This document shows positions 2,640 to 22,847 of a stretch of 26,343 bases of DNA, piece by piece (the first letter of the stretch is position 1; each line of letters starts with the position of its first letter). The notes under the pieces were generated by a model. That model did no database searches, was not told where the DNA came from, and saw only the letters and a list, made by a program, of their open reading frames with translations. Source of the stretch: Paramoeba atlantica (lineage: Eukaryota > Protista > Discosea); assembly GCA_977017575.1 (NCBI GenBank), contig CDRNVI010000110.1, positions 1 to 26,343 of the forward strand, read 5' to 3'. A program made the translations under genes and the position numbers.

Positions 2640-5005
2640 TTTTTTTTTTACTATAGTGTAATCCTTTCAGGTCAGGGCATCCGGCTTACGTTGTATGTCG
2701 GAAAACGTTGTCTTAATAATTGTATGATATAAACTGCGAATCCTCTTCAAACAATTCTTTTCGTAAACTATGAGACTTCCTACCACGGATTCTCACTGCA
2801 TATTCCATCAAAAAGCGCAAATATCGTCCCCATGGCTTTGGCTCAGGTACTTTCTGAGCTGGCCTAGGAGAATGTTTCCATTCATCTCCTGCAAGAGAAG
2901 TATGAAATCGTTTTCCACCTTGCTGGGCTCAATAGAAATGTTTTCCGCCAGAAGCCGTAGCAGCTCCCGAGTTCGGGCGTGCAATGAGCCACTTGACAGC
3001 ACCGGTAAACAGGCGAATTGCTCCTCGGCGAACATATTCGATGAGACGTATTTGGTGTTTTTCCGCGCGATCGCATCTTTGATTGCCTTCGCCGGTGTTG
3101 TTCCCGCAAGAGATGGTGCCAGATCGTGTACGACGGTGAGATCATAGAAGATTTCACCTGTCGCCCAATAAATAACCAAATCGGGCCCTGAACGGTGTAG
3201 CGTGCTGCCTTTGCATGTCGCAATGTGCTCTCGCCGACGTTCTTCTCGGATCACCTCGGAGCATGATGTGCACACATATGTGGAGAATTGCCGTGGCTCT
3301 AATTCACAAGGAATACCCGCACGCAGACACATATTATGAATATAGCGTACTAGTGCGTTGTGCTTTACCGTTGTATTCATTCCCGCACATCGGACGCAAC
3401 CCGGAATATGTGTAAGGGCAGTGGCACTGTTTAGAAGAACTCTGCATCCGGGGCAGGTGAGAGATTCGGGAAGACGTGGATGGCCCATTCCCAGGCGGGG
3501 CATTACTGCTAAGGTGAATTTCCGCGACGGCACGAGTCGCTCGTTTGCTTGTATCCATGTATAACTACCCTTCTTCGTTGTAGCGTCCATGATTCTTGCA
3601 AATTTCTTGTTCTTCCGAAGGCGCTCCTTCACTTCTTTGTGCATCTTGACTTCGACTGCCGTCATCTCAGCGACAGGTGCAGTGTCCGACTCGCTAGGCG
3701 TGACTTGAGCTGAAAGGAATTTTGGCTGCTCAAAAGCCACACTGCGCGACGCCTGGTACGCGGCCGCTCGGAGTGCATCAGTAGAAGGCAGGCCCAGCCC
3801 ACCCATACGAAGGGGAAGCCTTGCCCAGTCCAGTTGATCTTGCGTCATTGGTCCGAACCATGTCTTCAGAACTTTATCAACTTCGCCGTCAAACTCCTTT
3901 GCCATCGCTTCAGAGGAGTTCGGTGTGTGTGTGCGAATATGAAAACGATGACGAATGTTAACACATTTAGAGAGCAGGATAATAGATACGTTGCTCGCTC
4001 CCATCTGACTTAACCGACGGAAAATTGTTTTATGTTTCTGTAGCTTTTCTAGTAGTAGGGGATCTACCTTTTCGTCTTCTCCCACGTAAGCGCCGAGAAC
4101 CTTGATTGCGTCCTTCTCTACGTTGACTTGCGCCATTCGCAGAACTTCCGGAATTTCCGTGCCCTTCGTTCCTCCGAACCACACACATTTATGATTTGCC
4201 ATTTGCATGTTTCTTTCATTCAACAAATCCCACAGTCTATAAAATGCCTTCGTTAGGAGTGCAGGATCATCCGAAGCAAAGTTTATGTCGTCTATGTATG
4301 CGAATATTTTGATCGAGGGAAATTCTAAGGCCAGCGTTGCGAGGATGGGTTGCATCATTGTACAGAAAAGAAGCGTAGAAAGGGGAGACCCCTGTCGAAC
4401 TCCTGCTGTGCTGAAAACTTTGTCGTGTAACTTTCCGTCTGATCCAAAATACAGCAGCTCCGACGGCTCGGCATATTGAGCGTGAAAAAGCCTCCAGAAC
4501 GGTCGCAAACTAGAGAACGCGAAGAGTGCGTTCGCGATGTCTTGCCTCCAAGGAGTGTTGAATGCATTGCTGATGTCCATTGTTAGGATTGATTGTCCTT
4601 CCTGATAGAGTTTATGTAGGCGGTGTAATACTGTTTCACATCCTGATTTAGTTGCCACTCCGAATTGCCACGGAGCAAAAATCGGCGGCAGACAATGTTC
4701 ATATTTTTGCAACAAGACGATCTCTGCTAATTTTAGAAAAATCTCCCCAACAGCAACCGGGCGCACGTCCCTTCCATTTGCTTTCGGTATGGCGACTAAC
4801 CTTGCCCTCTACAACCTGTCCATCACGTCTTTCGAGATCGCTCCATTTACAACATCCAGTAACATGTGACACAGAGCTGTGCAACAGATTTGATCGTCGA
4901 GCAACAGTCTGACTATACCGTCCGTTGTCCCAGATGGACCGGGTGCCGCGCCCTTGGCCAATCGACGACCTGCCTCGCGGAGTTCTTCCGTTGTTATGAT
5001 CGCTG
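2640..5005 (-). mobile_element. CRE-2: 5'-truncated CRE-like non-LTR retrotransposon with 3' UTR and A10 tail
   Basis: RT-RLE coding sequence spans 2808-5003, and T10 at 2640-2649 is a plausible poly(A) tail. Confidence 0.8.
2808..5003 (-). pseudogene. CRE-2 reverse transcriptase plus restriction-like endonuclease (premature TAG at 4809-4811)
   Basis: Motifs: RPVAVGE, QFGV, DISNAFN, GVRQGSPLS, YIDD, LGA, RLPLRMGGLG, CPGC-x11-H-x3-C, KHN, EPR, GPDL...YDLTVVH and RKNTKY. The frame continues upstream of 4766 as LAKGAAPGPSG...DRL*RARLVAIPK. Confidence 0.93.
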
Positions 5006-5339: not shown

Positions 5340-8300
5340 TTACAACCGAAGTCCTCCCATCCATTTCTCTGCCGGGATGTAGTCTCTGAGTTGAGATACT
5401 ATCGTGTAAGCGGACATCTTCTCAATCTCGAGTTGGAACGCGTTGCGCACGTTATCATAGTTCAGCTTCGCTCTTTGTGAGAGAGCCTTTAATAGGGCCT
5501 TTGTATCAACATGTAGCAGGCCGCAATCTGTTGCGGCCAGACATTTGAATGAATCGCTGTCGACGCCTTTCTCAACCACATATTTCTTGTACTTTCTGTC
5601 GGCGACCTGTTGCATGAGGGCAGAGCTGGTTTGTTTGGCATAGCTAGTACAGCACGTGTGAACCACTGTAAAATCATAGAGCACCTCACCGATGTGAGGC
5701 CACATGATGGCAAGATCTGGGCCGGAACGAATGCGGCGGGCTTTGCAAGGATGTTGCTCGGCGACTTCTGCGGAAATCGTGCACTTACATTTTGTGCAGT
5801 GGTACGAAGAGTAAATGCGCGGTTCGATAACACTAGGCAGGCCTGCTTTTGAGCATAACTCTGCGAGATAACGGACTATGTGTGAATGCTTGCGGGTAGA
5901 GTTCATGCCGGAGCAACGGGAACATCCAGCAACGTGGGGAAGGATGGTTGAAGGAGATTCTTGATTCGAACATCCAGGGCAAATCATTTTGGTCGGTGCT
6001 TTTGGCACGCCGATTCCCAAGCGCATCATGAGCGTGTATCTGAAAAGATACGGGTTAACGTAGTTACTTGTATGTTCGAGGTGAAAATTAGCTTCCTTGG
6101 TGCGCTTCAAGATATTTGTTAAGGTTGAGTCTTTTTGCACTTCAATTAATTGCTTGTCATGCGCTTGGCTCAGGTTCTTTTTAAGAAATTTGCGGGCCTT
6201 TTCCGCGCGGCTCTGAGCTTTAGCTTTGACCTTGCCGCTGCCCTCTGAATCTACCGGAGCGTTATTGGGTTCAAATTGCTCTTCAATAGATTCTCGGGCA
6301 GCTGCGAAGTAATATTGTTGTTTCAGAGTGCAAGAAATCAAGCCTAATCCGCCTAGTTTTTGCGGGAGCGCTGCAAGCTTGAGTGCCTGGACATCGGCGC
6401 CACACCATTTCTGCAGGACCTCGTGTATGTGCTGCTCGAAAGATTGGGCTAGGTAAAGAGTAGCCTCCGGGCGGTGAACTCTTAAATGGTAGTCTTGGCG
6501 TGGAATTGTACAGCGGCGCAAAATCGCCAGAGAGAGGTTACTCGGGCCCATGAGAAGAAGGCGACGAAATAGGCATTTGTGCTTGTTCAATTTGCGCAGG
6601 AGAAGATCTTCTACCACATTGTCTTTGCCGATATAGGCTCCTAGGATCTTTATCGACTCGGTGCAAAGATTAACGCCTAAGTTTTCTAATGAAAAGGGTT
6701 CGCATGACGCACATTTCTGAAAGAATTCACATTTTTGAAAGTTAACGCATAGATTGAGCTCGGCTGTGGTTTCGCGTAAGTGCAGGAACGCCGCTTCGAG
6801 TGATCGCACGTTGGTGGAACTGAGAGTCACGTCGTCTTGGTAGGCTCTTATTTTGACGTCAGGGTATAGGCTTAGGACTTCTCGAAGAGGACCTTGTAAG
6901 AGTGCACAGAAGTACATGGAGGATAGGGATGATCCCTGGCGAATTCCTGAAGAGCTTTCTATGGTTGCAAAAAGGGCATTGTGGGCGAAAAACAATAGTT
7001 CAGATGGCAGGCCGTATTCCAGATAAAACATGCGCATGAAAGGTTTAAACACGGGATTATCTAGTAGTGCCTGGGTTATAGCGTCACGACGTGGAGTGTT
7101 ATACGCATTGCTGAAGTCAACGGTAATCAATGCGTGTCCATTCTCGTATTCACTTAGTAGTTCGTGCACTATCGATTCACACGCGTTCTTGTGGAGTACA
7201 CCTCGTTGGATGGGCGCAAAGTACTTTCGTAGTGCGGCTTCATGTCGCTGAAGTAAAATGGACCCGCAGATTTTGAGGATCGTGTCCCCCATGGCAACCG
7301 GGCGTATACCATTTCGCTGTCTGTGTCGCGTCTGCTGGTAATTCGAAAACGCAAGGAGCCGCAGGGTGCAGTTTTTGGAGTTTGGCAAATGTTTCTTTAT
7401 CAGATAATTTGTTGATTACAGTGACCTGATCCAGAACTTTTGCCGCTTTTGAGATCGACCCCTCGAGCACAAGGCGTGTGGCTTTTTTTATCGCTCTGCG
7501 ATCAGCGAATTGCCCTTCGTCCGCGTCCTTCTCTCTTTCTTCAAGCTCGGATTGCGTAAGCACTGGGCGACGTCGTCGACTGCGCGCTGACTGCTCTCTT
7601 AATTCTGCCAGCGAGTATTTCATCGCGGAGAGCACCCTGTGCCATATCCGACAGCGGTGAACATAATCACAATCTGCATAATCCCTCATAAGATCGCGGT
7701 AAACCGACACCACGCACGGTATAAATGCAGCGCTTACGTTTCTGACTGTAGGAATAGGTTCGTAATCCAAATCTTCGACTGTTTGCTTCACAGACGGTAT
7801 ATCTTTTGCAGGCGCGACTTGCTCGTCTTGAGCGCCTCTATTCAAAACGTTAATCCATACAATTTTATAGATGCGCACACTTTCCTGAGCAGGAATCGAT
7901 CCCGCGAAGCTTCGTTCCTTGCAGTGTCCTTGTAGGCCGTTGTATTTTACAGTCAGTCTGCGTACACCTGCCCTTGATCTCGCCGTTTGAACTGTGCCAG
8001 CAGAGATGTTTAACAATACTTGTTGGTCGAAACACCACGCTACCACACATTCGTCGCCTTTCCGAGCATTTCTGGTATGTGACTCCACTTCTTGCGGCGT
8101 CAATGGGAACTCAGTCTCAGGTTTCACGTTTGCGCGCATGTCGTCCACAATTTGCGTTAGTCGGTCTGCATTGTTCGTCGAATCTACATTCACTTCATCA
8201 AGCGGCAGGGGCGAGGGTATGCGGCCTGGGCTGGGTGATTGTCCTTTCTCCTCTGACGCGGGTGAGCTGCAGTCGTAGAACTCTTCTGGCTGAATTTCAG

Positions 8301-8345
8301 GTTGCGCAACTGGTTTGGACTTGGAGGCAGTTGTTGCTTGTTGTT
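5340..8345 (-). pseudogene. CRE-3: CRE-like retrotransposon ORF with an internal frameshifting deletion near 7325
   Basis: ORFs 7240-8193 and 5340-7388 join as LPADATQT / RNGIRPVAMG. About 65-70 codons present in CRE-1, -2 and -4 (LAKG..PGP..RLVA) are missing. YQDD, GIRQGSSLS, CPGC..H..C and GPDL..YDFTVVH are present. The frame is open upstream to about 8345 without an ATG. Confidence 0.92.
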
Positions 8346-8366
8346 TTTATTTTTATTTTTACTCGT

Positions 8367-9285
8367 ATGAACACGCAAAACGCCGAACAAATTATGAAGA
8401 GGGGATCAACGCTCGATAAGCCAAAGAAAACCCCCCGTGTGAGAGTTATTATGAGTGCAAAGGAATTATCGCCGAACTGGGCCGACCACGAGGTACATAG
8501 CAACTACCGACGGCCAAGGATAAAATTTTCTGATGCAAGGCCGACCTCACAAGAGTCCGAGAATGATTCCGATGAGGAGAGAGATTCATCCAAACATCCT
8601 GAAGATTGCGAAGGCGCCTCCGATGATACCACAGGCGAAGAATCTGATGTGATGTCGGTGGATGAGGACGTAACGTCGATGGATGGGGAAGTGGGGCAAC
8701 GCAAAAACGAAGAATTTCCGAAGGCTCCAGATCACATCAACACCATTATCCATGAATGGGGCAAAGGAACGACGTGCGAACTGAGATGGGGATTCAAAAA
8801 AGAGCAGAAATATGCCTCAAAAGGAGTAGTGGTGAAGAGGACTGTCCGAAAAGGTATTGTAAAGCTGAAGGTGGAATACAAGCCAAGCGACGGAGACAAT
8901 GGACCCTCTGGTTTTATCTACCTTCCTCCATCTGCAAAAGTGAAAATTTGGTCCATTAAGGCACTGTGTCTAGATAAAGTAAAAAGCGTCGATGTGTCAA
9001 TGGAAAACACTGGAAATTCAGAGAACAAGGAGGAGCGAGGCATTGAGGGAACATCTGATTTGGAACCGCTGCCAAAGATGGCACAAATTGATCCAACGTT
9101 TGCCGTCCATGTAATCGCGATTTTTCGTTCCATTATTAAAGCGTACCCGAAGGCTCAGACAGAAGCAGAAAGAACTGTTATCTGGCACAAACTCCTCGAT
9201 ACACCACGGGACTCTTTGGCCACAATCCGTCTAAACTACCTACGTCGCCAGAGCTCCGTACAGCGTCGAGGGAGACGTGAGTGGG
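8367..9285 (+). pseudogene. CRE-4, 5' part (interrupted at 9285 by YR element V1)
   Basis: ATG at 8367 follows a T-rich tract. ELRWGF..KGVV..VEY..LPP, DLEPLP, FRSIIKAY and IWHKLL are homologous to the CRE-1 and CRE-3 N-termini. Confidence 0.88.
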
Positions 9286-9454
9286 AAACTATCGATAGGA
9301 CATACATTTTAATTTCGTCTGTTTTAGAAAATAGGATAAACTAAACTCTTCAATTCTTGCAAAAGTGTAACTCATTAAATATTAGACTCATTCCATGTGC
9401 TATATGTTCTTCTATTTTCTTCTAATGGGCAAACTAGATGAGGGCTAAGTATGG

Positions 9455-9472
9455 TTTGCTTTGAAAATACGG
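9455..9472. repeat. 18-bp internal direct repeat of V1, TTTGCTTTGAAAATACGG (second copy 13245-13262)
   Basis: Exact match. One copy lies 7 nt after the RT stop and the other 12 nt before the gag ATG. Confidence 0.9.
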
Positions 9473-9478
9473 AATTCC

Positions 9479-12400
9479 CTACGGGCGCCGTAGGCTCTCA
9501 ATATAAGTACCGATGGAGGGCAGTGGTGTCAATTCTTCAGCGCTGGATTTTCTCGTGAAGGGATCTGATATTTGGGCGTTGGTAGGTACCCACTTTACTT
9601 CCAGGTTAGTGTTTGATGGGATGTACTGCATCCACCTATTGGCAGTGAAGTTAGTGCTTGCCCGCCTCTGGAGGGCCATGGCCACAGGCGCGTTGTCGAC
9701 GTTCAATAGAATGTCCCGATGTCCTTTTCTGACTGCTGCCATAATTCCACCAAGAGCCGCACTCAGCTCTGAGTAGAATATATGGGCTCCGGGCTTTGTC
9801 ATGCCCTGTTTTGCAGTTTCGAGAATGCCTTGATTGAACAACAGAATAGCCCATGCGATTGAACTGGCATCAGTCCAAACTTCCACCTTTTCTTCTTTGG
9901 GTATATGACCTATCTTTTTTAACCAAACATTTCGCTTGAGTGCGGAAAATGCATCAGTCAGTTCGCCTAACAGGTGGTCGGTCGGAGAGAAGGAGATCTC
10001 CCAAGACTTTTCGTCGTGCACTTTTCTGGCAACTTTTCCTAGTGTTTGAAGAAGGTGTGCAAAAGTGCATAGTGGGATTTTCATAACCGTGGCCCTCCAC
10101 ATTAGTAAACCAGAAAGCGTATACAGTTCCACAGCTGTCCACGTCCCATTCCCGATTATGTCATTGTATCTTGAATACGCCTTTTCAGTCCACTTTTCTG
10201 ACATGCGGTACTTCTTATTTTTTAGATCAAATTCAATACCAAGTACGCACGCTTCCTGTAGTGGCTTCATGGTGAGATCATCTACTTCTAGTTGAACTGC
10301 GTGGACTCGGGCGCGAAATTCTTTTGCATGGTTTTCTACTTCTGACTTGGATTTTCCGAACAAAAGAAAATTGTCTACCCAGGCCAATCCAATGTCCCGG
10401 ACAATGCGATTTGAAACTCGCTGTGCAATAGCCGGGGCCCATGACCATCCCATGGGCATGGAAGAAAATTGAATACTGCATGTTTCTCCTCTAGCGTGAC
10501 CTAAAACCGCTCCAAAGTAGGATCGGATCTCGGGAGCGAGGGAAAATTGGTAAAAGTAACTCCGTGCGTCCGCGTGAGCCATCCATTCCGAATCTAGCAG
10601 ATTTTCAATCACGTTATGTATGGATGGTAGGTGCATTGCGGGGGGGCATTCGAAAACTCGGTTGAGTTTCCTACAATCGCAGATTAGACGAAGTGTGGAG
10701 TCTTTCTTCGGAACTGTAAAGGTACGATGTACTACTATCGGTCCTTCGGTCTTCTCTACAACCCCCATGCGTAATAAGTCTGGTAAATGATGTCTCATAA
10801 ATCGAGACACTGGTCGATTGCCTTTAGGTGCACGCAGCATGTGCGCGTGAAAGGCGTTGACGTTCTGTAGTAGATGTAAAAAGTCTAGGCTGCCATCGTC
10901 ATTCATATTGTTCAGTATAGAATATGACAGTCTTGTGGTTGTGATAGGAGCAATTATTCCCTGATTTTTGTACGCTCGCACGCTCGGTGGTCGGGTGAGC
11001 TGCCCGCGAGACATAGACTGATTGTTTGTGTCTTCAATTTTCTTCGTTGCAATGTTAGCAATGTCCGTTGAATTATGCACGTAGATAGGTTCGGGATTCG
11101 GTTCGCCTATAATGTTATCGCTGTCTAGCGTGATCTTACCGATGTGCAAGGGGAACCTACCTTGTAATTGACGTTTTAGTATGTAAACAGCTGATTTAGT
11201 TTTCTTGTCATGTCCTTTGGTGTTTTCTGGGTTCACAGTAATTTTGTCGCGTCCTGTAGCCCTAGGGACAAGGCCACTTCCAGTCGAGGGAGATATATCC
11301 ACAATGTCTCCAGATCTTTGTGCTTGGCCAACAGCTGTATTACCGACAGTGGAACTCCCTTTCTGAGGAGTGATACTAGAGCCCCTCTTTTTACAGAATG
11401 TGCCGACAACTCTGCTTTCACCCGCTTCAGCACGGCATTGGCTCTCAGCGTCGTTAAAGTCGTGAACTTGTCTTCTGGCTTCAGCTTGTCCAATTGGTCC
11501 ATGAAGATTTTCCACTCCGTCAAGTTGCAAGTCATTGGAATAGCAGTCCCTACTCTGAAGGGATCCCCTTTGTGAGTCGGAAACGTTACTCCCAGTATTC
11601 TCCGCTCGAGATCTACCACTTGTAAATCTAATTTCCTCAGATGTTTGACATCGTCTATTCTGCTGCATGTCTTCCACGCCAAGGTCAGGCCCGCGGCTTC
11701 GTCCGGAAGCAGCCATTCGCACGCCTCCAATACTTGTTCGCGTGTAGCCGGGGGCGCCTGATGCTCCGGTATTTGAGCCCCTTGACGCTGAAGGGATCGC
11801 ATGTAGGCTGTTACTGTCGACTTTTGCAATTGACCCCCAGATCGGAATATGATTTGTATCAGACTCTTTGCATACGTATGTGCGGTTTGGATGCTGATGG
11901 TACCCCGTTGAGTTTGCGGATTGATTAGTCTCATTTTCGACTCCAAGAAGCATATTATGCACCAATCTTCGCTTGGAACGTCGTTTCCGAGATTTTCCTT
12001 CCAAACTGTATACTGTTTGTACACGCTGGAAAGGTGATTCCAGCGCGAGTTGGATTTCTCTTCTAATAGACGATCCTGGCCTAGAACGATCATTTGTTGA
12101 ACGTCGACTGTAGGAATCGCGGCTCTTGTTTCTCTGTTGCCTTCCACGCGGTCGAGGAAGAGGTCTTCGATCTCCAGTAAGTTCTTTGCTCTTGATCTTG
12201 TTACTATCCCTGTAACAGCCCTGTTGCTCGTGGAAGGTTGCTTGTACTGAGTACTTCGGACATGACTGGTAGTGCCGGCGCCGGTTGTGGTTTCCGTTTG
12301 ATTTCCGTATGTTTCGTTTCCCTCTTCTTGATATTGATTTTTTATGCCCCTTAATAAATATATTTCCAGAATATTCTTCACTGTAAAGATTATTGCCCCT

Positions 12401-12607
12401 AATGTCGATAGTTCTATTATATTGCCCCTTATATAATCTATTGTTTCTTGGACTAAATTTCTGTTGAATTCTTCGAGTCAGAATTTTTTCCCTTGCGGTT
12501 TTGTCATCGGGCCCGCGTTTCGCCCTGTTCGGTCGTTTTTTGTATCCATGGCTTTGATCATTGCAGGTAGAATTTTTCCCCGCAGTCCCCCGGTCGTTTT
12601 TGCTTCT
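9479..12607 (-). CDS. V1 reverse transcriptase-RNase H; frame open from 12607, first ATG 11953
   Basis: RT: FTVPKKDSTLRLICDCRKLN, HADARSYFYQF, MPMGWSWAP, WVDN. RNase H: WTDAS, YSEL, VDN, ISDPFTR. I checked codon by codon that 12005-12607 contains no stop. Confidence 0.9.
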   Translation of the reverse strand, partial: RSKNDRGTAGKNSTCNDQSHGYKKRPNRAKRGPDDKTAREKILTRRIQQKFSPRNNRLYKGQYNRTIDIRGNNLYSEEYSGNIFIKGHKKSISRRGKRNIRKSNGNHNRRRHYQSCPKYSVQATFHEQQGCYRDSNKIKSKELTGDRRPLPRPRGRQQRNKSRDSYSRRSTNDRSRPGSSIRREIQLALESPFQRVQTVYSLEGKSRKRRSKRRLVHNMLLGVENETNQSANSTGYHQHPNRTYVCKESDTNHIPIWGSIAKVDSNSLHAIPSASRGSNTGASGAPGYTRTSIGGVRMAASGRSRGPDLGVEDMQQNRRCQTSEEIRFTSGRSRAENTGSNVSDSQRGSLQSRDCYSNDLQLDGVENLHGPIGQAEARRQVHDFNDAESQCRAEAGESRVVGTFCKKRGSSITPQKGSSTVGNTAVGQAQRSGDIVDISPSTGSGLVPRATGRDKITVNPENTKGHDKKTKSAVYILKRQLQGRFPLHIGKITLDSDNIIGEPNPEPIYVHNSTDIANIATKKIEDTNNQSMSRGQLTRPPSVRAYKNQGIIAPITTTRLSYSILNNMNDDGSLDFLHLLQNVNAFHAHMLRAPKGNRPVSRFMRHHLPDLLRMGVVEKTEGPIVVHRTFTVPKKDSTLRLICDCRKLNRVFECPPAMHLPSIHNVIENLLDSEWMAHADARSYFYQFSLAPEIRSYFGAVLGHARGETCSIQFSSMPMGWSWAPAIAQRVSNRIVRDIGLAWVDNFLLFGKSKSEVENHAKEFRARVHAVQLEVDDLTMKPLQEACVLGIEFDLKNKKYRMSEKWTEKAYSRYNDIIGNGTWTAVELYTLSGLLMWRATVMKIPLCTFAHLLQTLGKVARKVHDEKSWEISFSPTDHLLGELTDAFSALKRNVWLKKIGHIPKEEKVEVWTDASSIAWAILLFNQGILETAKQGMTKPGAHIFYSELSAALGGIMAAVRKGHRDILLNVDNAPVAMALQRRASTNFTANRWMQYIPSNTNLEVKWVPTNAQISDPFTRKSSAEELTPLPSIGTYIESLRRP
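11233..12477 (-). CDS. V1 tyrosine recombinase
   Basis: Catalytic set R (KTCSRIDD), K (THKGD), H-x-x-R (AHSVKRG), H (AKHKD) and Y (LWIYL). The frame begins directly after the gag TGA; first ATG 12093. Confidence 0.92.
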   Translation of the reverse strand, partial: LEEFNRNLVQETIDYIRGNIIELSTLGAIIFTVKNILEIYLLRGIKNQYQEEGNETYGNQTETTTGAGTTSHVRSTQYKQPSTSNRAVTGIVTRSRAKNLLEIEDLFLDRVEGNRETRAAIPTVDVQQMIVLGQDRLLEEKSNSRWNHLSSVYKQYTVWKENLGNDVPSEDWCIICFLESKMRLINPQTQRGTISIQTAHTYAKSLIQIIFRSGGQLQKSTVTAYMRSLQRQGAQIPEHQAPPATREQVLEACEWLLPDEAAGLTLAWKTCSRIDDVKHLRKLDLQVVDLERRILGVTFPTHKGDPFRVGTAIPMTCNLTEWKIFMDQLDKLKPEDKFTTLTTLRANAVLKRVKAELSAHSVKRGALVSLLRKGVPLSVIQLLAKHKDLETLWIYLPRLEVALSLGLQDATKLL

Positions 12608-13233
12608 TCAAGAGCCTGTGCGAAGACGCGGCAGTCCCCATGCTGAACGCGAACTTTGTAAGCAACCAACGCCGCCAATATGTTGTCCCCGACCGCCATG
12701 TTCCCGTCTGATTTCCATACAAGTCCCATTTTCATTGAGTTTCGCACCCAAGCCAAAAATGCTAGCAACAAATCGTTCTTCCGATGCTCGTCTTGGTGAT
12801 AGCGTGGGGCATTGCGTTCGGCAGCTCCAATACCAAAGTAGCGACGCAAATGAGCGTCCAATTCCACAAAACTACGATCTCGCGTCTCCGAGGGTGCCTC
12901 GATGAACATCGCGTACGTAGATAATTCAAGCGGTTCGAACGTTCCAGTCTCTCGGCCTTCAACACGCTCCATCGCAGCGGAGTAAGGGTCAGTGGCGAGT
13001 TTCTCCACCCCATGTAATCGAGCATTCGTCGGAGGAAACGTAAGCTCGCCAAATTTCGCATAGTCCACCAACATAGTTGTTTTCTCTTCGCCAATCTTCT
13101 TCACCACTCCCTTCCACATTTCTCCACGTGGCACTTTGTCTGAGGACCATAAAACCGCGATAGTGACGCCAACCTGACTCTCGGCCACAAACCGTCCAAT
13201 GCGAGAGTCAGATAGTGGGGGGAGGTCATTCAT
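12478..13233 (-). CDS. V1 Gag-like ORF1 (251 aa)
   Basis: First ORF of the element. It is similar to the V2 ORF1 (N-terminal beta module, then FEPLELSTY versus IFPLTWKSY). No CCHC knuckle is seen. Confidence 0.75.
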   Translation of the reverse strand: MNDLPPLSDSRIGRFVAESQVGVTIAVLWSSDKVPRGEMWKGVVKKIGEEKTTMLVDYAKFGELTFPPTNARLHGVEKLATDPYSAAMERVEGRETGTFEPLELSTYAMFIEAPSETRDRSFVELDAHLRRYFGIGAAERNAPRYHQDEHRKNDLLLAFLAWVRNSMKMGLVWKSDGNMAVGDNILAALVAYKVRVQHGDCRVFAQALEEAKTTGGLRGKILPAMIKAMDTKNDRTGRNAGPMTKPQGKKF

Positions 13234-13485: not shown

Positions 13486-15910
13486 GATTAGCATCCCACA
13501 CGGCGAACATTACCGAGGAAGAACGACTTGTACAAGAAGTAGACAAACGATCAATTCGAAATGCATTGCAAGCAGCAAAGGCAGGAAATCTTGGAAAAGC
13601 TACCCGCATACTCGACAATGTTTACAAGGACTCTGCTCTTCCACTCTGGGAAAAGGTTGACAAACTTCGAGATCTACACCCCAAAGGCCCTACACCTCAA
13701 ACTTCTGATCGAGACTTCCCGCGAATTGCGATATTGGAACCTTCTGAACTTCGTCTAGCGACTGAAAAATTGTCAAAAGGTGCAGCTCCTGGCCCGACAG
13801 GTCTGAGTGAAAGCATGATGCGAATTTTAGTGGAGGACGAAGAATCCTGCCTTTCACTCTGCCACATGCTGAGAGACGTCATAAATGGGGAAGTTGCGAA
13901 AAGTGTCCGAGTAAGATTAACACGATGCAGAATGATAGCCCTTGCAAAACCGAACAATGGAATACGACCGGTTGCAATGGGGGAAACGCTGCTAAAAATT
14001 TGCGGTTGTATCCTCCTTGAGCGCCATGCGAACTCCTTGTCAGACATATTCCAACCGATCCAAAGAGGCATATTACAAAAGAATGCATGTGAGTCCATTG
14101 TACATGAACTTTTGGAAGAGCATGAAGCTGGAGCCACAATTTTGACGATTGATTTCAAGAATGCATACAATACGCCACAACGTACGGCAATAGAAGAAGC
14201 GCTCCTTCAATACCCGGTATTCAAACACTTTATGCGAATGTTCTATTTTGAATATGGTCAACCATCGGAACTTTTATTTTTCGCCAACGACTCATTACAT
14301 TCCGTGATCGAAAGCTCGTCTGGGGTCCGTCAAGGATCAGCACTCTCTTCGGTTTATTTTTGCGCACTGCTACAAGGTCCTTTGAAAGAAATTGCGAAGC
14401 TCTATCCAGAGGTTACTATCAGAGCCTACCAGGACGATGTGACGATGAGCTCCAAAAATGAGTCGTCTTTGGAAGTTGCGTTCCTTCACCTCAAAGAACT
14501 AGCAAGTGGTCTGAATCTTGAAATTAATTCCCGTAAATGCGAAGTATTCCAAGGCAACAGTTCAACGAATAATCGAGGGATGGATCTCAAGGAACTTGGG
14601 GTGGAAGACTGTGTGGATTCCATCAAGGTCCTAGGAGCATACATCGGGCATAATAAAGCCGTTGAACGAAAGCTCTTGGAGAAGTTAGGGAAACATAAAT
14701 GTTTATTTCGAAGACTTCGCGCTATGGGTCCCAGCAACTTGTCACTAGCGATTCTCAAGCGATGTACCATACCCCGTCATGATTACCACCTTCGAGTCCA
14801 CAAACCTGGAGCTTCGTTTCTTCTTGCCCAGGTGTTCGACGAGGAAATCCATGAAATCTTAAAGAAATGGTGTGGTGCAGATAGTGAAGCACTTAAACTC
14901 TCTGCCCTCCCATGTAAAATGGGAGGTCTAGGAATCACCTCAACCGTTCTAAAGCAACGCTACTTTTTCGAAGCGTCCCTAAAATCTATTGATGAGCGAT
15001 CGAAACCCATTAATGCTCCGGTAGATAAGGGAGGCAAGAAACAAGCCGACAGGACACGAACGAATTCACAAGCTGCACGCACCCAGCTAAGAAAGAGCAT
15101 GAAGAATGAACACGAGAAGACAGCAGCAGAATTGAATGCAATACCGAGATTCCAAAATATCATAAAGCGAACGAAGGAGGCGAACAATCACTTAGATTCA
15201 ACGTGCAACTACGTAAATCCATATCTTTTTCGTTACACTCTAATGATGCGCCTAGGAATTGCTCTAAGTAATGTGTCAGGCGAGATTACATGCCCTGGAT
15301 GTGGAACAATCGAAACATCAAGCAAAATCATTCACGATGTGCTGGCATGAATTGCACGAGAAAACATTCTCATTTGGTACGCTATATTGCCGAAATGTGC
15401 TCCAAAGCTGGTCTTCCATGTGCGATCGAACCTCGTATTCATGCGTCCTTTTTTTGCACCAAATGCAAGTGCTCAATTTCCCCAGAAGCGGCGGAATACC
15501 ATCCTTGCCGAGCGCGTCGAATTAGATCTGGCCCAGACCTAGCGATTATGTGGCCAGATGTTGGAGAAATTTTATACGACGTTACCGTGGTACATACGTG
15601 CTGCAGCAGCTATGCAAAGCAGAGCAGCAATGCCCTGCTGCAGAGTGCGGAAGAGCGGAAGATAGCAAAATATGTCAAAGAAAAAGGTCTTGATCCAGAA
15701 TGCTTTCGCTGCATAGCTGTGACAGATTGTGGAGTACTACATGAAGAGACAAAGGTTTTGCTGAAAACATTGGCGAAAAGAAATGATGTTGATTACAAGA
15801 TTGTACGAGAAGCTTTTCAACTTGAACTGGAAAAATATTCAGCCTATGCAGTCGCTCAATTGCGCCAATATATAGAAACCGAGAAATGGGTAGGAGGACT
15901 CCGTCTTTAA
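13486..15910 (+). pseudogene. CRE-4, 3' part: RT plus RLE, with a small frameshifting deletion near 15331
   Basis: KLRDLHP, GAAPGPTG, IRPVAMGE, DFKNAYN, GVRQGS and YQDD are present. About 6 codons of the zinc knuckle (PHVAGC in CRE-3) are missing at the junction of ORFs 13566-15350 and 15290-15910. GPDL..YDVTVVH follows. Confidence 0.93.
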
Positions 15911-20507: not shown

Positions 20508-21682
20508 ATTATCGATGCACCGGGGAGAAGTACTGACACCTTCTGAGTCCCTAACGCTCTTGCCGTAGTTATTTGGTTGGCGTTGTACCGCAGTAGACTT
20601 TCTACGTTCAAGTGCTTTGAGAGATTCATTACTTCCGATAAGTTGAGGTGGCCTTCTACTATTTCCTGAAATAGAAAGGTGATGGCTCCTCTCTTGATTG
20701 AGTGCGTGCCATATCCGTCGCCTAGGACGTCTCGAATATGGAGATCCATCTCCTGAACTGTCGCGGTGCTCATTCGTTGCCCTGGTCGCAGGCTGCTTAC
20801 ATACTGAGCTATTTGGTTTGTGCCCGGACCCGTGATGATCGCGTACATGTACGGTCGGTACGGATTTAGACGAGTGGTCTTCGTGAAACGTCCCCAGTAG
20901 ATTATTATTTCATTCGAATTTACACTCAGAAATTGCTCCCTTCTTAGCTCGGCCGTTTCGGTCCAGCGTGACGCGGCTTTCCAGCATAGCAGGACCGTCA
21001 TTGCTTGTGTTATCGACAGGCGTGTGCACAATTTTTGCAACATGGGAGGTGTTATCGGTTGCATTTGACGTTGTGGTTCCGTGCCCCCCTGGGCCTGAAT
21101 CGCTTTTGTGAACAACTTCAACGGATTGCATTCCATCCCCATCAACGTGAAAACCGTGTGAAGAGCGCGAGCATAATTGAGGCGAGTTGACGGCGCGACG
21201 CGTAGAGTCTGGAGATACAAAATGGCGGTTGCTGAATTCATCTCTCGGTGCTTCACGCGACAAAATTCGTTTACGTTTTTCCATAGGCGTGTTCTGTTGT
21301 TCCAAGTCGACTTTGCCCACATCGGCTGAATCGCTTCGGTCAGCTGGACGGAGTCCGGATCGTCCGGATTTATCCTCAGAATTGCCTGAGTAATGTTTTG
21401 AACTTGGTCGTGGGATACATCGCGACTGTGTTCTCGTTTTAGTCCTCTGACTGTTTGCGAATCTGTGCGGTGCGCGACACGTGTTTGAGGTAAGACCCTT
21501 AGTGGAATCAGTCGTGTGCAAGGATGCATTTTGGTCTGTATTGGGATACGAGTAGTTTTGGGCACACTCCGGGCACTGATTTTGGGAAATTTGGGAGAGC
21601 ACCTCACGAACGAGTTTTGCAAACTTTTCCACGATCTCTTCAATCCAATGACACGAGTAGTTTTTGGGGTGGGGAACAATCC
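20504..21682 (-). CDS. V2 tyrosine recombinase
   Basis: R (KAASRW), K (FTKTT), H-x-x-R (THSIKRG), H (SKHL) and Y (LLRYN). In frame with gag across one TAG; first ATG 21529. Confidence 0.92.
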   Translation of the reverse strand, partial: GLFPTPKTTRVIGLKRSWKSLQNSFVRCSPKFPKISARSVPKTTRIPIQTKMHPCTRLIPLRVLPQTRVAHRTDSQTVRGLKREHSRDVSHDQVQNITQAILRINPDDPDSVQLTEAIQPMWAKSTWNNRTRLWKNVNEFCRVKHREMNSATAILYLQTLRVAPSTRLNYARALHTVFTLMGMECNPLKLFTKAIQAQGGTEPQRQMQPITPPMLQKLCTRLSITQAMTVLLCWKAASRWTETAELRREQFLSVNSNEIIIYWGRFTKTTRLNPYRPYMYAIITGPGTNQIAQYVSSLRPGQRMSTATVQEMDLHIRDVLGDGYGTHSIKRGAITFLFQEIVEGHLNLSEVMNLSKHLNVESLLRYNANQITTARALGTQKVSVLLPGASIM

Positions 21683-22645
21683 CTAGTGGATTGTCCGTCT
21701 TTCGCTGCGCACCATTTGGTGGGAACGCGCAGCGCCACTCGCCACCCCCCTCTGAAAAATCTGAGTCAAAAGAGGACAGTTAGCACGTATATGACCTGGT
21801 TTACGACAATTATAGCAAACAGGGTTGGCACGGCGAGAAATACGAGTTTGCTTGAGCTGTTCCTCAAGCATCATTTTCCCAAATACGTCATTGGGGTCTT
21901 CCACTTGATGGAGGCGTTGTTGAACACGATCGACTGGCGCTCCAGCAGCTGCCCAATAGTGCGTGCGTAACTCCTCGATCAGCATGGTAGCGATAGCAAC
22001 GAAATCTTCTGTCCAGGTGCCTAGCTCGCGCGCCGCATAAATCCATTTGGTGAGGATAGTAAACAAGCGCTCTCGGATTGGGGGAGGGTTGAAGCGAACA
22101 CCTAATTGAGGAGCATCGCGCAATTCTCTGATCAATTCACGGGGCTTGAAGTCATCTTCAGAGTATATATACGATTTCCATGTCAAGGGGAAGATTACTG
22201 AAAATGCCTTGGGGTTTTCTACGCCCACTTCAGATTGGATAGGATCACTCACCCGTTGTCCACCCGGCATACGTGCTTGAACCTTGACGAAACTGAGATC
22301 GTAATAGCTTATATCCGGGAAAGGAAACGAATATTCAATGTCAGGGTCATCGTCCCATCGCGCTTTAATCTCACTGTTCGGATCTTTTGGATTCTTAAAG
22401 TAGACACGACCTGTAACCGTGTATCGATCCTGGTCCCCTCGCTCCGACCACACTGCTTGAACGAAGACGCGATAACCTCGTGAGAGTAGTAAATTGGTTT
22501 TATCTGCAAATTCTCGCAAAGCTTCTTCGGACAACGGAACGGCATGGCCACCGCCTTGCAGAATCGCCTCAACCTGGCCAGGGTTGAGTGTCTGCTGGTG
22601 ATCACTCGGCGCGGCCGGATCAGGACTGATCGCTCTGGCCGTCAT
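21683..22645 (-). CDS. V2 Gag-like ORF1 (320 aa) with CCHC zinc knuckle
   Basis: CYNCRKPGHIRANC fits C-x2-C-x4-H-x4-C. Confidence 0.88.
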   Translation of the reverse strand: MTARAISPDPAAPSDHQQTLNPGQVEAILQGGGHAVPLSEEALREFADKTNLLLSRGYRVFVQAVWSERGDQDRYTVTGRVYFKNPKDPNSEIKARWDDDPDIEYSFPFPDISYYDLSFVKVQARMPGGQRVSDPIQSEVGVENPKAFSVIFPLTWKSYIYSEDDFKPRELIRELRDAPQLGVRFNPPPIRERLFTILTKWIYAARELGTWTEDFVAIATMLIEELRTHYWAAAGAPVDRVQQRLHQVEDPNDVFGKMMLEEQLKQTRISRRANPVCYNCRKPGHIRANCPLLTQIFQRGVASGAARSHQMVRSERRTIH

Positions 22646-22847
22646 CGCACACTAATAAAAATAACTTGTAAGAGAATGTAAGCTATAAAACTATACACAA
22701 TCTACATAAAGTTATAATTTAAATCATATTAAAAGATATAATAGAATTCATAATCAGAGATTATGTGCCTCGTAGGGCCATTCGAGAAAAATGAGTCTTT
22801 TCAAATTCGTATTTGTTCTCGTCTAAATTTCCTCTCGTAAACTATCA
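22643..22847. repeat. Module A, 205 bp (other copies 1616-1820 and 18163-18367; partial diverged copy 24562-24679)
   Basis: Near-identical by direct comparison. Its left end coincides with the gag ATG. Confidence 0.95.

Follow-up and report, generated by a model that had tools for sequence, protein, structure and literature searches.

The stretch of DNA analysed here, referred to below as the window, comprises 26,343 nucleotides (nt) of the Paramoeba atlantica assembly GCA_977017575.1 (contig CDRNVI010000110.1, positions 1 to 26,343). Part of it is, to judge from open reading frames (ORFs) and Pfam domains, the coding core of a VIPER-like tyrosine-recombinase (YR) retrotransposon with the layout A1 - gag - YR - RT/RH - B1, in which RT/RH stands for reverse transcriptase and RNase H and A1 and B1 are split direct repeats. 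The gene order, a gag-like gene followed by the recombinase and then by RT/RNase H, matches that of VIPER-type YR retrotransposons (order DIRS). The arrangement of the frames suggests that all three genes are expressed from one start by recoding at the end of gag. All features of the element lie on the minus strand, and coordinates are those of the whole window.

13506–13263, minus strand: 5' split direct repeat A1, placed by the sibling copies L001 and L093 and by a contig joint in DNA reads.
13262–13245, minus strand: 18-nt copy of the head of repeat B, between A1 and the gag ATG.
13233–12478, minus strand: gag-like ORF of 251 amino acids (aa), from ATG 13233 to the stop TGA 12480–12478; the next codon is CTC.
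12607–9479, minus strand: RT frame (-1 relative to gag), open for 1042 codons; last upstream stop TGA 12610–12608, end TAG 9481–9479.
12607–11233, minus strand: spacer 'X', the -1 frame across the end of gag and the whole of YR, ~458 codons, stop-free and with no AUG in the first 218 codons.
12580–12574, minus strand: G_GGA_AAA heptamer, a possible shift site, in phase, not conserved.
12541–12535, minus strand: A_AAA_AAC heptamer (gag codons T-K-N), the favoured candidate shift site, in phase and conserved.
12514–12508, minus strand: third in-phase heptamer, G_GGC_CCG.
12480–12475, minus strand: candidate readthrough site, UGA plus CUC, with a conserved stop context.
12477–11233, minus strand: YR frame, 414 codons in the same phase as gag, ended by the next stop, TGA 11235–11233.
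12429–12342, minus strand: AGGGGCAWWA, three times, 50–135 nt downstream of the gag stop.
11232–9479, minus strand: RT/RNase H part of the -1 frame, with RVT_1 at ~10714–10283 and the RNase H-like domain at ~9871–9590.
9472–9298, minus strand: 3' split direct repeat B1, placed by the sibling copies and the read joint.

The gag-like product has neither a Pfam domain nor a CCHC box and is homologous to the gag ORFs of related elements (E 1e-15 to 1e-32). The YR frame matches Pfam Phage_integrase at residues 332–396; its catalytic residues R273, K303, H360, R364, H386, and Y395 form an intact R-K-H-R-H/W-Y set and are invariant in a 13-lineage alignment. Pfam detected RVT_1 (E 1e-11) and RVT_3 (E 2.4e-5) in the RT frame, and alignment places W-V-D-N where other enzymes have YxDD. 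Pfam found no methyltransferase domain and the RT frame stops 36 codons past the RNase H-like domain, which separates the element from DIRS1 and PAT; the same gene order, split direct repeats and lack of a methyltransferase are given for VIPER and TATE (PMC6681497; PMC12278014). A preliminary description of this DNA had reported that gag ends in TGA-CTC with YR open behind it in the same frame, that the -1 RT frame is stop-free from 12607 to 9479 with an overlap of ~458 codons and no ATG before 11953, and that G_GGA_AAA and A_AAA_AAC lie in phase within gag; each of these points was confirmed. The first ATG of the YR frame past the gag stop is codon 129 (12093), and the first ATG of the RT frame is codon 219.

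The ends of the element are defined by the two sibling copies, L001 and L093, which come from one ENA assembly, at 99% identity. In both siblings the segment corresponding to window 13506–13245 recurs directly after B1 and is followed by B2. The full set of split direct repeats, A1 ... B1-A2-B2, is thus seen in the siblings, and the window copy has A1 and B1 only. A contig joint 9297->13504 (B1-A2) in the DNA runs supports the split repeats. The element occurs at high depth in these runs, and their consensus differs from the window at few bases, none of them in the stop, the heptamers or the frames. L093 carries frame-breaking indels. A SIRE-like short A-B element was suspected at the loose end at 9472 and was rejected, as this proved to be an ordinary A2-B2 junction.

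The RT frame contains no stop across the whole of YR. When the 414 YR codons were shuffled, either in order or among synonymous codons (5000 shuffles each), 18.0 and 16.4 stops were expected in the -1 frame, respectively, and 0 of 5000 shuffles reached zero in either case. The preliminary description had put the expectation at roughly 20 over ~458 codons; the shuffles give 16–18 over YR, and the scarcity that it pointed out is far beyond chance. Codons standing before an AA, AG or GA codon never end in T in the window (0 of 113, against 22% T elsewhere). As controls, 38 stops were counted in the +1 frame over YR and seven in the -1 frame across the body of gag. Five further lineages treated in the same way each have no stop where 8.5–18 are expected (0/5000 at zero), and pooled with the window they show T before AA, AG or GA codons in 0 of 691 cases; gag bodies do contain -1 stops. 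About 90 related loci were retrieved, ~34 of them with a recognisable YR, and in all of these ~34 the open RT frame extends 410–630 codons ahead of the RT domain and spans YR completely. The frame relationships, on whose conservation the preliminary description had staked its proposal, are thus kept across relatives. Relative to the gag stop, the RT frame of the related loci opens at -196 to +12 nt, and the layout is common to at least 17 divergent lineages with RTs ~25–45% identical.

The translation of X is basic, is rich in R, S, and G, and contains few hydrophobic residues. In the pairs L005/L018, L012/L049, and L020/L059, the fastest-changing sites are YR codon position 3 (0.40, 0.55, and 0.20), at rates resembling those of position 3 in the non-overlapped parts of gag and RT, and the identity of X is 55, 38, and 77% versus 82, 68, and 89% for YR. 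The X of the window has no similarity to that of any other lineage, whereas homology between lineages is clear for gag and YR. A hidden conserved domain in X was considered and rejected, since substitutions in the pairs track the YR frame and X is unmatched elsewhere. Pairwise substitution patterns indicate purifying selection on YR, RT, and gag; in X, as far as sequence comparison tells, the sole visible constraint is the absence of stops, not the protein sequence. A spacer kept stop-free with no constraint on its protein is what would be expected if ribosomes traverse X in the -1 frame. Such a spacer would not be expected if RT started at an internal AUG, since the first AUG lies deep in the open frame (window, codon 219; L002, codon 472; L007, codon 559).

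A separate observation concerns four loci (L027, L031, L023, and L069; RT 37–41% identical) that have an open N-terminal extension of 455–581 codons but in which no frame encodes a detectable YR. These extensions are homologous to one another in L027, L031, and L069, a pattern that suggests a YR-less derivative family.

Exactly one stop separates gag from YR in at least 17 lineages. Among 19 metagenome lineages of the window's architecture (type A, with YR in the gag frame and RT in -1), the stop context is TGA-CTN in 15, TAG-G in two, and TGA with another next codon in two. The window's relatives L094 and L095 have TGA-CTN too, and the peptide past the stop is otherwise unconserved across lineages. 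UGA followed by CUN is a known leaky stop context. From the gag stop to the first AUG, the zero frames of 17 lineages contain no stop in 622 codons, where 11 are expected when the codons of the overlapping frame are shuffled (0/2000 simulations reach zero). Two conserved YR blocks of the window, YKQPSTSNRAVTG at 12246–12208 and DLFLDRVEGNRETR at 12165–12124, correspond to YR codons 78–90 and 105–118 and hence lie upstream of the first AUG. Conserved recombinase sequence before any AUG, together with the near-invariant UGA-CUN, favours readthrough, and readthrough into YR in this element appears moderately supported by these comparisons. In the window, the sequence past the stop folds with z 0.0, and a weak AU-rich hairpin has the UGA in its loop; in L020/L059 UAG-G is followed, 8 nt on, by a 9–10-bp hairpin. 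The three AGGGGCAWWA matches fall within 90 nt and the motif occurs nowhere else in the 26-kb window (0.18 expected; 0/100 shuffles reach three); the triplet could serve to stimulate recoding, to signal packaging or to bind a protein.

Slippery heptamers are concentrated just before this stop. Counting XXXYYYZ with Y = A or U, in-phase heptamers number 18 in 462 codons in the zone from the opening of the RT frame to the gag stop versus 46 in 13,518 elsewhere in gag and YR, a ~11-fold enrichment (Fisher p 1.4e-12, some of the loci being related). At least one is present in 13 of the 19 loci. The zone measures just 19 nt in L005 and L018, each of which has an in-phase A_AAA_AAC (within C_CCA_AAA_AAC in L005), and the 31-nt zone of L007 contains G_GGA_AAC. 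In aligned gag C-termini the T-K-N of the window, encoded by A_AAA_AAC, corresponds to G-K-K, P-K-N or T-K-N in others. The nearest relative, L094, whose gag is 78% identical (~68% at the nucleotide level), has C_CCA_AAA_AAC at the homologous site and the non-slippery CGC GGT CAC in place of G_GGA_AAA. The Trypanosoma cruzi Dm28c VIPER sequence (PMC6681497, supplementary file 10) has an in-phase TCA AAA AAC (A_AAA_AAC) 27 nt before the gag TGA. Past a 6-nt spacer there is a GC stem of 10 bp whose loop contains the UGA; the fold has -34.9 kcal/mol and z -3.6 relative to mononucleotide shuffles. Both heptamers had been proposed as shift sites; the comparison favours A_AAA_AAC, which recurs in L094 and in T. 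cruzi VIPER, over G_GGA_AAA, which could act as a shift site but is absent from L094. The GC stem GGGCGAAACGCGGGCCC that had been noted as well is present 9 nt past the second heptamer, but it consists only of a 4-bp GGGC/GCCC pairing, and the 80 nt downstream of A_AAA_AAC fold no better than shuffles (z +0.2). Among relatives, a hairpin lies directly after the site in L012 (z -3.5), L020 (-3.1), L002 (-2.1), and L059 (-2.0), and folding found no significant one after the site in L005, L018, L021, and L070. As sequence evidence goes, a -1 frameshift into the RT frame is well supported.

Forms in which the genes are joined occur among the relatives. A protein search found 50 RT homologues, and the relatives comprise metagenome contigs, the prokinetoplastid transcriptomes PhF_6 and PhM_4, and Diplonema papillatum; no trypanosomatid protein is among them. 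As far as these searches show, the likeness to VIPER is one of architecture only, the named relatives by sequence being Diplonema and prokinetoplastids. In the PhM_4 transcriptome, a 1169-aa ORF (P0094) has Gag in frame with X-RT/RH and no stop between, and its Gag is homologous to that of the window over the whole length (E 2e-10). The same transcript encodes in another frame P0067, a YR 40% identical to the window's. In Diplonema papillatum, P0041 and P0092 have integrase and RT domains in one chain, in gene models as annotated. The sequences of these single-ORF relatives suggest that they are fused polyprotein forms of the same family.

From these sequences we infer a shift, its exact site, readthrough, and ratios of products as follows. 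Translation would start once, at the gag AUG, with three outcomes. Most ribosomes would stop at UGA 12480–12478 and release Gag. A fraction would read through UGA-CUC and continue in frame into the recombinase, yielding Gag-YR. Another fraction would slip by -1 a short distance ahead of the stop, with A_AAA_AAC at 12541–12535 as the likeliest site, translate ~435 codons of the -1 frame over YR as a basic spacer unconstrained in sequence, and go on into RT/RNase H, yielding Gag-X-RT/RH. We put the probability that frameshifting and readthrough operate together from one gag start at about 0.6. This three-product scheme, part of the earlier proposal, appears to fit the conservation data: the frames, the UGA-CUN context, the heptamer enrichment, the YR blocks before the first AUG, and the expressed fused relative. 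Among the sequencing runs listed, no RNA run carried the element, and the one labelled 'RNA?' contained no match to it.

A number of observations weigh against this scheme. Folding of the window sequence past the two heptamers and past the stop found no stable structure (z +0.2, 0.1, and 0.0; pseudoknots were not searched), an Rfam scan of 12250–12700 gave no match, and compensatory pairs are absent from three alignments. Structure past the stop cannot be judged from L092 or L094, since L092 (YR 62% identical to the window's) has lost gag and L094 is related only to 12 nt past the stop. Six of the 19 type A loci have no canonical heptamer. The RT frame of L040 and L041 opens 9–12 nt after the gag stop, so that the simple scheme cannot hold there unchanged. 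Contiguous gag and YR stretches were themselves one of the grounds for assigning loci to type A, and one locus, L082, has two stops. The host is placed in a group with trans-splicing, so that separate mRNAs are possible in principle. Several relatives (L002, L046, L070, and L021) have an AUG 3–13 codons past the stop, and the T. cruzi VIPER has TGA-ATG.

As to L040 and L041, a -1 shift in these loci (L040:912–1012, L041:863–963) would need prior readthrough. A possible site, UCA_AAC, lies 4 nt upstream of a CGGG-N7-CCCG hairpin that is kept in L037, L043, and L046, with a possible pseudoknot partner ~35 nt downstream. By eye, such a partner can be seen in the L037/L043/L046/L040 group (loop GGUCU with AGGACC; GGUUA with AAAACC in L040).

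The near AUGs and the abutting TGA-ATG of T. cruzi make termination-reinitiation a live alternative in those lineages. In this account only the -1 shift is programmed, ribosomes reach YR by reinitiating at the gag stop or by starting, internally or at a non-AUG codon, a short way past it, and gag and YR share a frame as a side effect of placing both downstream genes behind a single stop. It also draws on the lack of a detectable readthrough-stimulating structure in the window. It does not sit well with the 128 codons of the window that lack an AUG and nevertheless contain the conserved YR blocks, with the stop-free pre-AUG stretches of the 17 lineages, or with a stop that is nearly always UGA and a next codon that is nearly always CUN in front of an unconserved peptide. 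For these reasons we regard it as unlikely, though it deserves to be kept in mind.

The A6 run of AAAAAAC, and a second A6 run just upstream of the gag stop, raise the question of polymerase slippage, which would yield some transcripts with one A more or one A fewer and thereby place gag and RT in frame on those RNAs with no ribosomal shift. Slippage of this kind, or else variation in the genome, could account for the PhM_4 transcript, in which gag and RT share a frame. On the other hand, many lineages have heptamers with three As only (G_GGA_AAC, C_CCA_AAC or T_TTA_AAC), the T. cruzi VIPER shows the classic heptamer-spacer-hairpin geometry of ribosomal frameshifting, and the DNA contigs have no length variation here, although contigs drop rare variants. 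Slippage of the polymerase is thus very unlikely.

In Euglenozoa, polycistronic transcripts are processed by spliced-leader trans-splicing. Gag from 13233, YR from ATG 12093, and RT from ATG 11953 might then come from three separate trans-spliced mRNAs, in which case the frame relations would be meaningless; both internal ATGs do exist. This reading leaves unexplained why the RT frame is stop-free in every lineage for 218 (window) to 558 codons (L007) before its first AUG, why the YR frame is both conserved and free of stops ahead of 12093, and why slippery heptamers cluster before the gag stop, and we hold it to be quite improbable. Finally, a chance or relic layout in a dead copy, to which the missing 3' A2-B2 repeats of the window and the frame-breaking indels of L093 might point, is effectively refuted by the open frame that 0/5000 shuffles reproduce, by its recurrence in dozens of loci with RT 25–45% identical, by purifying selection on all three genes, and by the high-depth repeat with copies 99% identical.

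The closest parallel in layout is the VIPER of T. cruzi. In strain Dm28c its ORF1, ORF2, and ORF3 span 6599–7939, 7940–8956, and 7816–10653 (Ribeiro et al. 2019, PMC6681497), and simple arithmetic on these coordinates makes gag and YR contiguous in one frame and RT -1 to them. As in the window, RT opens shortly before the gag stop (~121 nt, against 127 nt in the window), the order is gag - YR - RT/RH, the repeats are split as A1 ... B1-A2-B2, and a methyltransferase is lacking; the short motifs W-[VI]-D-N in RT and HS[VI]KRGAL in YR, read by eye from the supplement of PMC6681497, are shared as well. The two differ in gag (251 aa with no CCHC box in the window, 446 aa with a CH-box in T. cruzi) and at the stop (TGA-CTN versus TGA-ATG), and the strong T. 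cruzi hairpin is missing in the window.

With retroviral -1 frameshifting the element shares a slippery X_XXY_YYZ at the 3' end of gag, an enzyme frame with no start of its own, and, in the favoured scheme, a minority Gag-enzyme fusion. Examples from retroviral gag-pro/pol are A_AAA_AAC with a pseudoknot in gag-pro of mouse mammary tumour virus (MMTV) and U_UUU_UUA in HIV-1. Unlike retroviruses, the element has ~435 codons, and relatives up to ~600, of non-conserved frame over another gene before RT is reached, has no protease, and shows no detectable stimulatory structure in the window. Stop readthrough between gag and pol is found in the gammaretrovirus murine leukaemia virus (MuLV), and UGA-CUA(G) is a leaky stop in cellular and viral genes. 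The single in-frame stop between gag and a downstream enzyme is common to MuLV and the window, and the UAG-G with a hairpin after 8 nt in L020/L059 resembles the MuLV geometry. A downstream RNA structure is required for readthrough of the MuLV type but not where the stop leaks by its context alone. Unlike in MuLV, the product of readthrough would be a recombinase and not RT, and the same gag end would also feed a frameshift.

DIRS1-like elements are likewise YR retrotransposons with extensive overlap of the pol and YR frames (PMC3266345). In the present element, by contrast, the whole of YR including its catalytic domain is overprinted by an N-terminal extension of the RT frame, and the direct repeats are split. 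The DIRS1 overview has VIPER as not usually having ORF overlaps (PMC3266345). In the searchable literature on VIPER-type elements, including PMC6681497, PMC3266345, and a 2025 mobilome paper (Lorenzi et al. 2006 lies outside this scope), neither readthrough nor programmed frameshifting is mentioned; 'overlapped ORFs' is all that is said, with the frames derivable from the table in PMC6681497. The preliminary description had likewise given the YR/RT overlap as noted before in VIPER, and the single in-frame stop and the slippery sites as perhaps not. The shared frame of gag and YR and the -1 frame of RT follow from published VIPER coordinates, and it is the recoding reading that is new within the searchable literature.

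A second architecture, type B, is found in at least 10 lineages. Here a single stop separates gag from the long RT frame, the two sharing one phase, and YR is in +1. The YR frame opens 11–224 nt before the gag stop in 10 of the 14 loci and past the stop in the other four. The gag end often reads GGN-UCC-UGA. UCC-UGA is the site of antizyme-type +1 frameshifting; the resemblance concerns type B gag ends only, and the window element is not of type B. In an RT tree the two types are interleaved, which requires five changes, at least three of them independent of long branches. What is conserved is thus the principle, one gag stop from which both downstream frames can be reached, and not a particular recoding event. 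Type B loci include L033, L034, L036, L039, L042, L047, L050, L057, L061, and L067.

These patterns lead us to a broader proposal, which we advance tentatively and rate at slightly under even odds. In these YR retroelements of Euglenozoa, among them canonical VIPER, the stop of gag would be a three-way translational switch that sets the ratio of Gag, Gag-YR, and Gag-RT. The assignment of recoding events would have flipped several times, and RT would be reached only through an overprinted spacer of 400–600 codons selected solely for the absence of stops. Type A elements may reach RT by a -1 slip and YR by readthrough, in type B elements readthrough may lead to RT and a +1 shift at UCC-UGA to YR, and some lineages may have fused the genes.

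The remaining observations concern the surroundings of the element and the form of its relatives. A second, distant YR retroelement lies at 22651–18918 (minus strand), with a YR 25% identical to that of the first. The gag of this second element encodes a CCHC knuckle and terminates in TAG-GGA, YR follows in the same frame (21682–20507), and the -1 RT/RNase H frame is open at 21779–20913 and, after one TGA, again at 20909–18918; an in-phase C_CCA_AAA lies 15 nt past the gag stop. The flanks of the first element contain three more RVT_1 ORFs, apparently of non-LTR (long terminal repeat) type, at 2808–4766 and 5340–7388 (minus strand) and 13566–15350 (plus strand). The window is thus a nest of retroelements. 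The 5' flank of the sibling copy L001 (nt 52–1518) is 65% identical to window 4404–2941. Among the relatives, L002 (9799 nt) contains two complete copies arranged head to tail, with a repeat period of 4753 nt. The contigs L009 and L010 (4606 nt each) come from related elements and differ in the point of the element at which they start, and the length of many metagenome contigs (4.3–4.7 kb) is close to that of a single element. Such contigs are compatible with tandem arrays or circular forms.

To our knowledge, the expression of the overlapping genes of YR retrotransposons (DIRS, Ngaro, and VIPER) has never been worked out, and programmed recoding has been little studied in Euglenozoa. VIPER-type elements account for a considerable share of the T. 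cruzi genome. A conserved recoding hub at the gag stop would, if true, be the first concrete expression model for these elements. It predicts a recombinase and an RT that are both tethered to Gag, and it would make these elements natural systems for testing -1 frameshifting and UGA readthrough in euglenozoans. The spacer provides a clean example of selection only for the openness of a frame, which bears on how overlapping genes are detected and interpreted; if the switch view is true, its 400–600 codons would be an unusually long translated sequence with no protein-level constraint. The repeated swaps among -1, in-frame, and +1 arrangements would then mean that the mode of recoding can change while its output stays constant.

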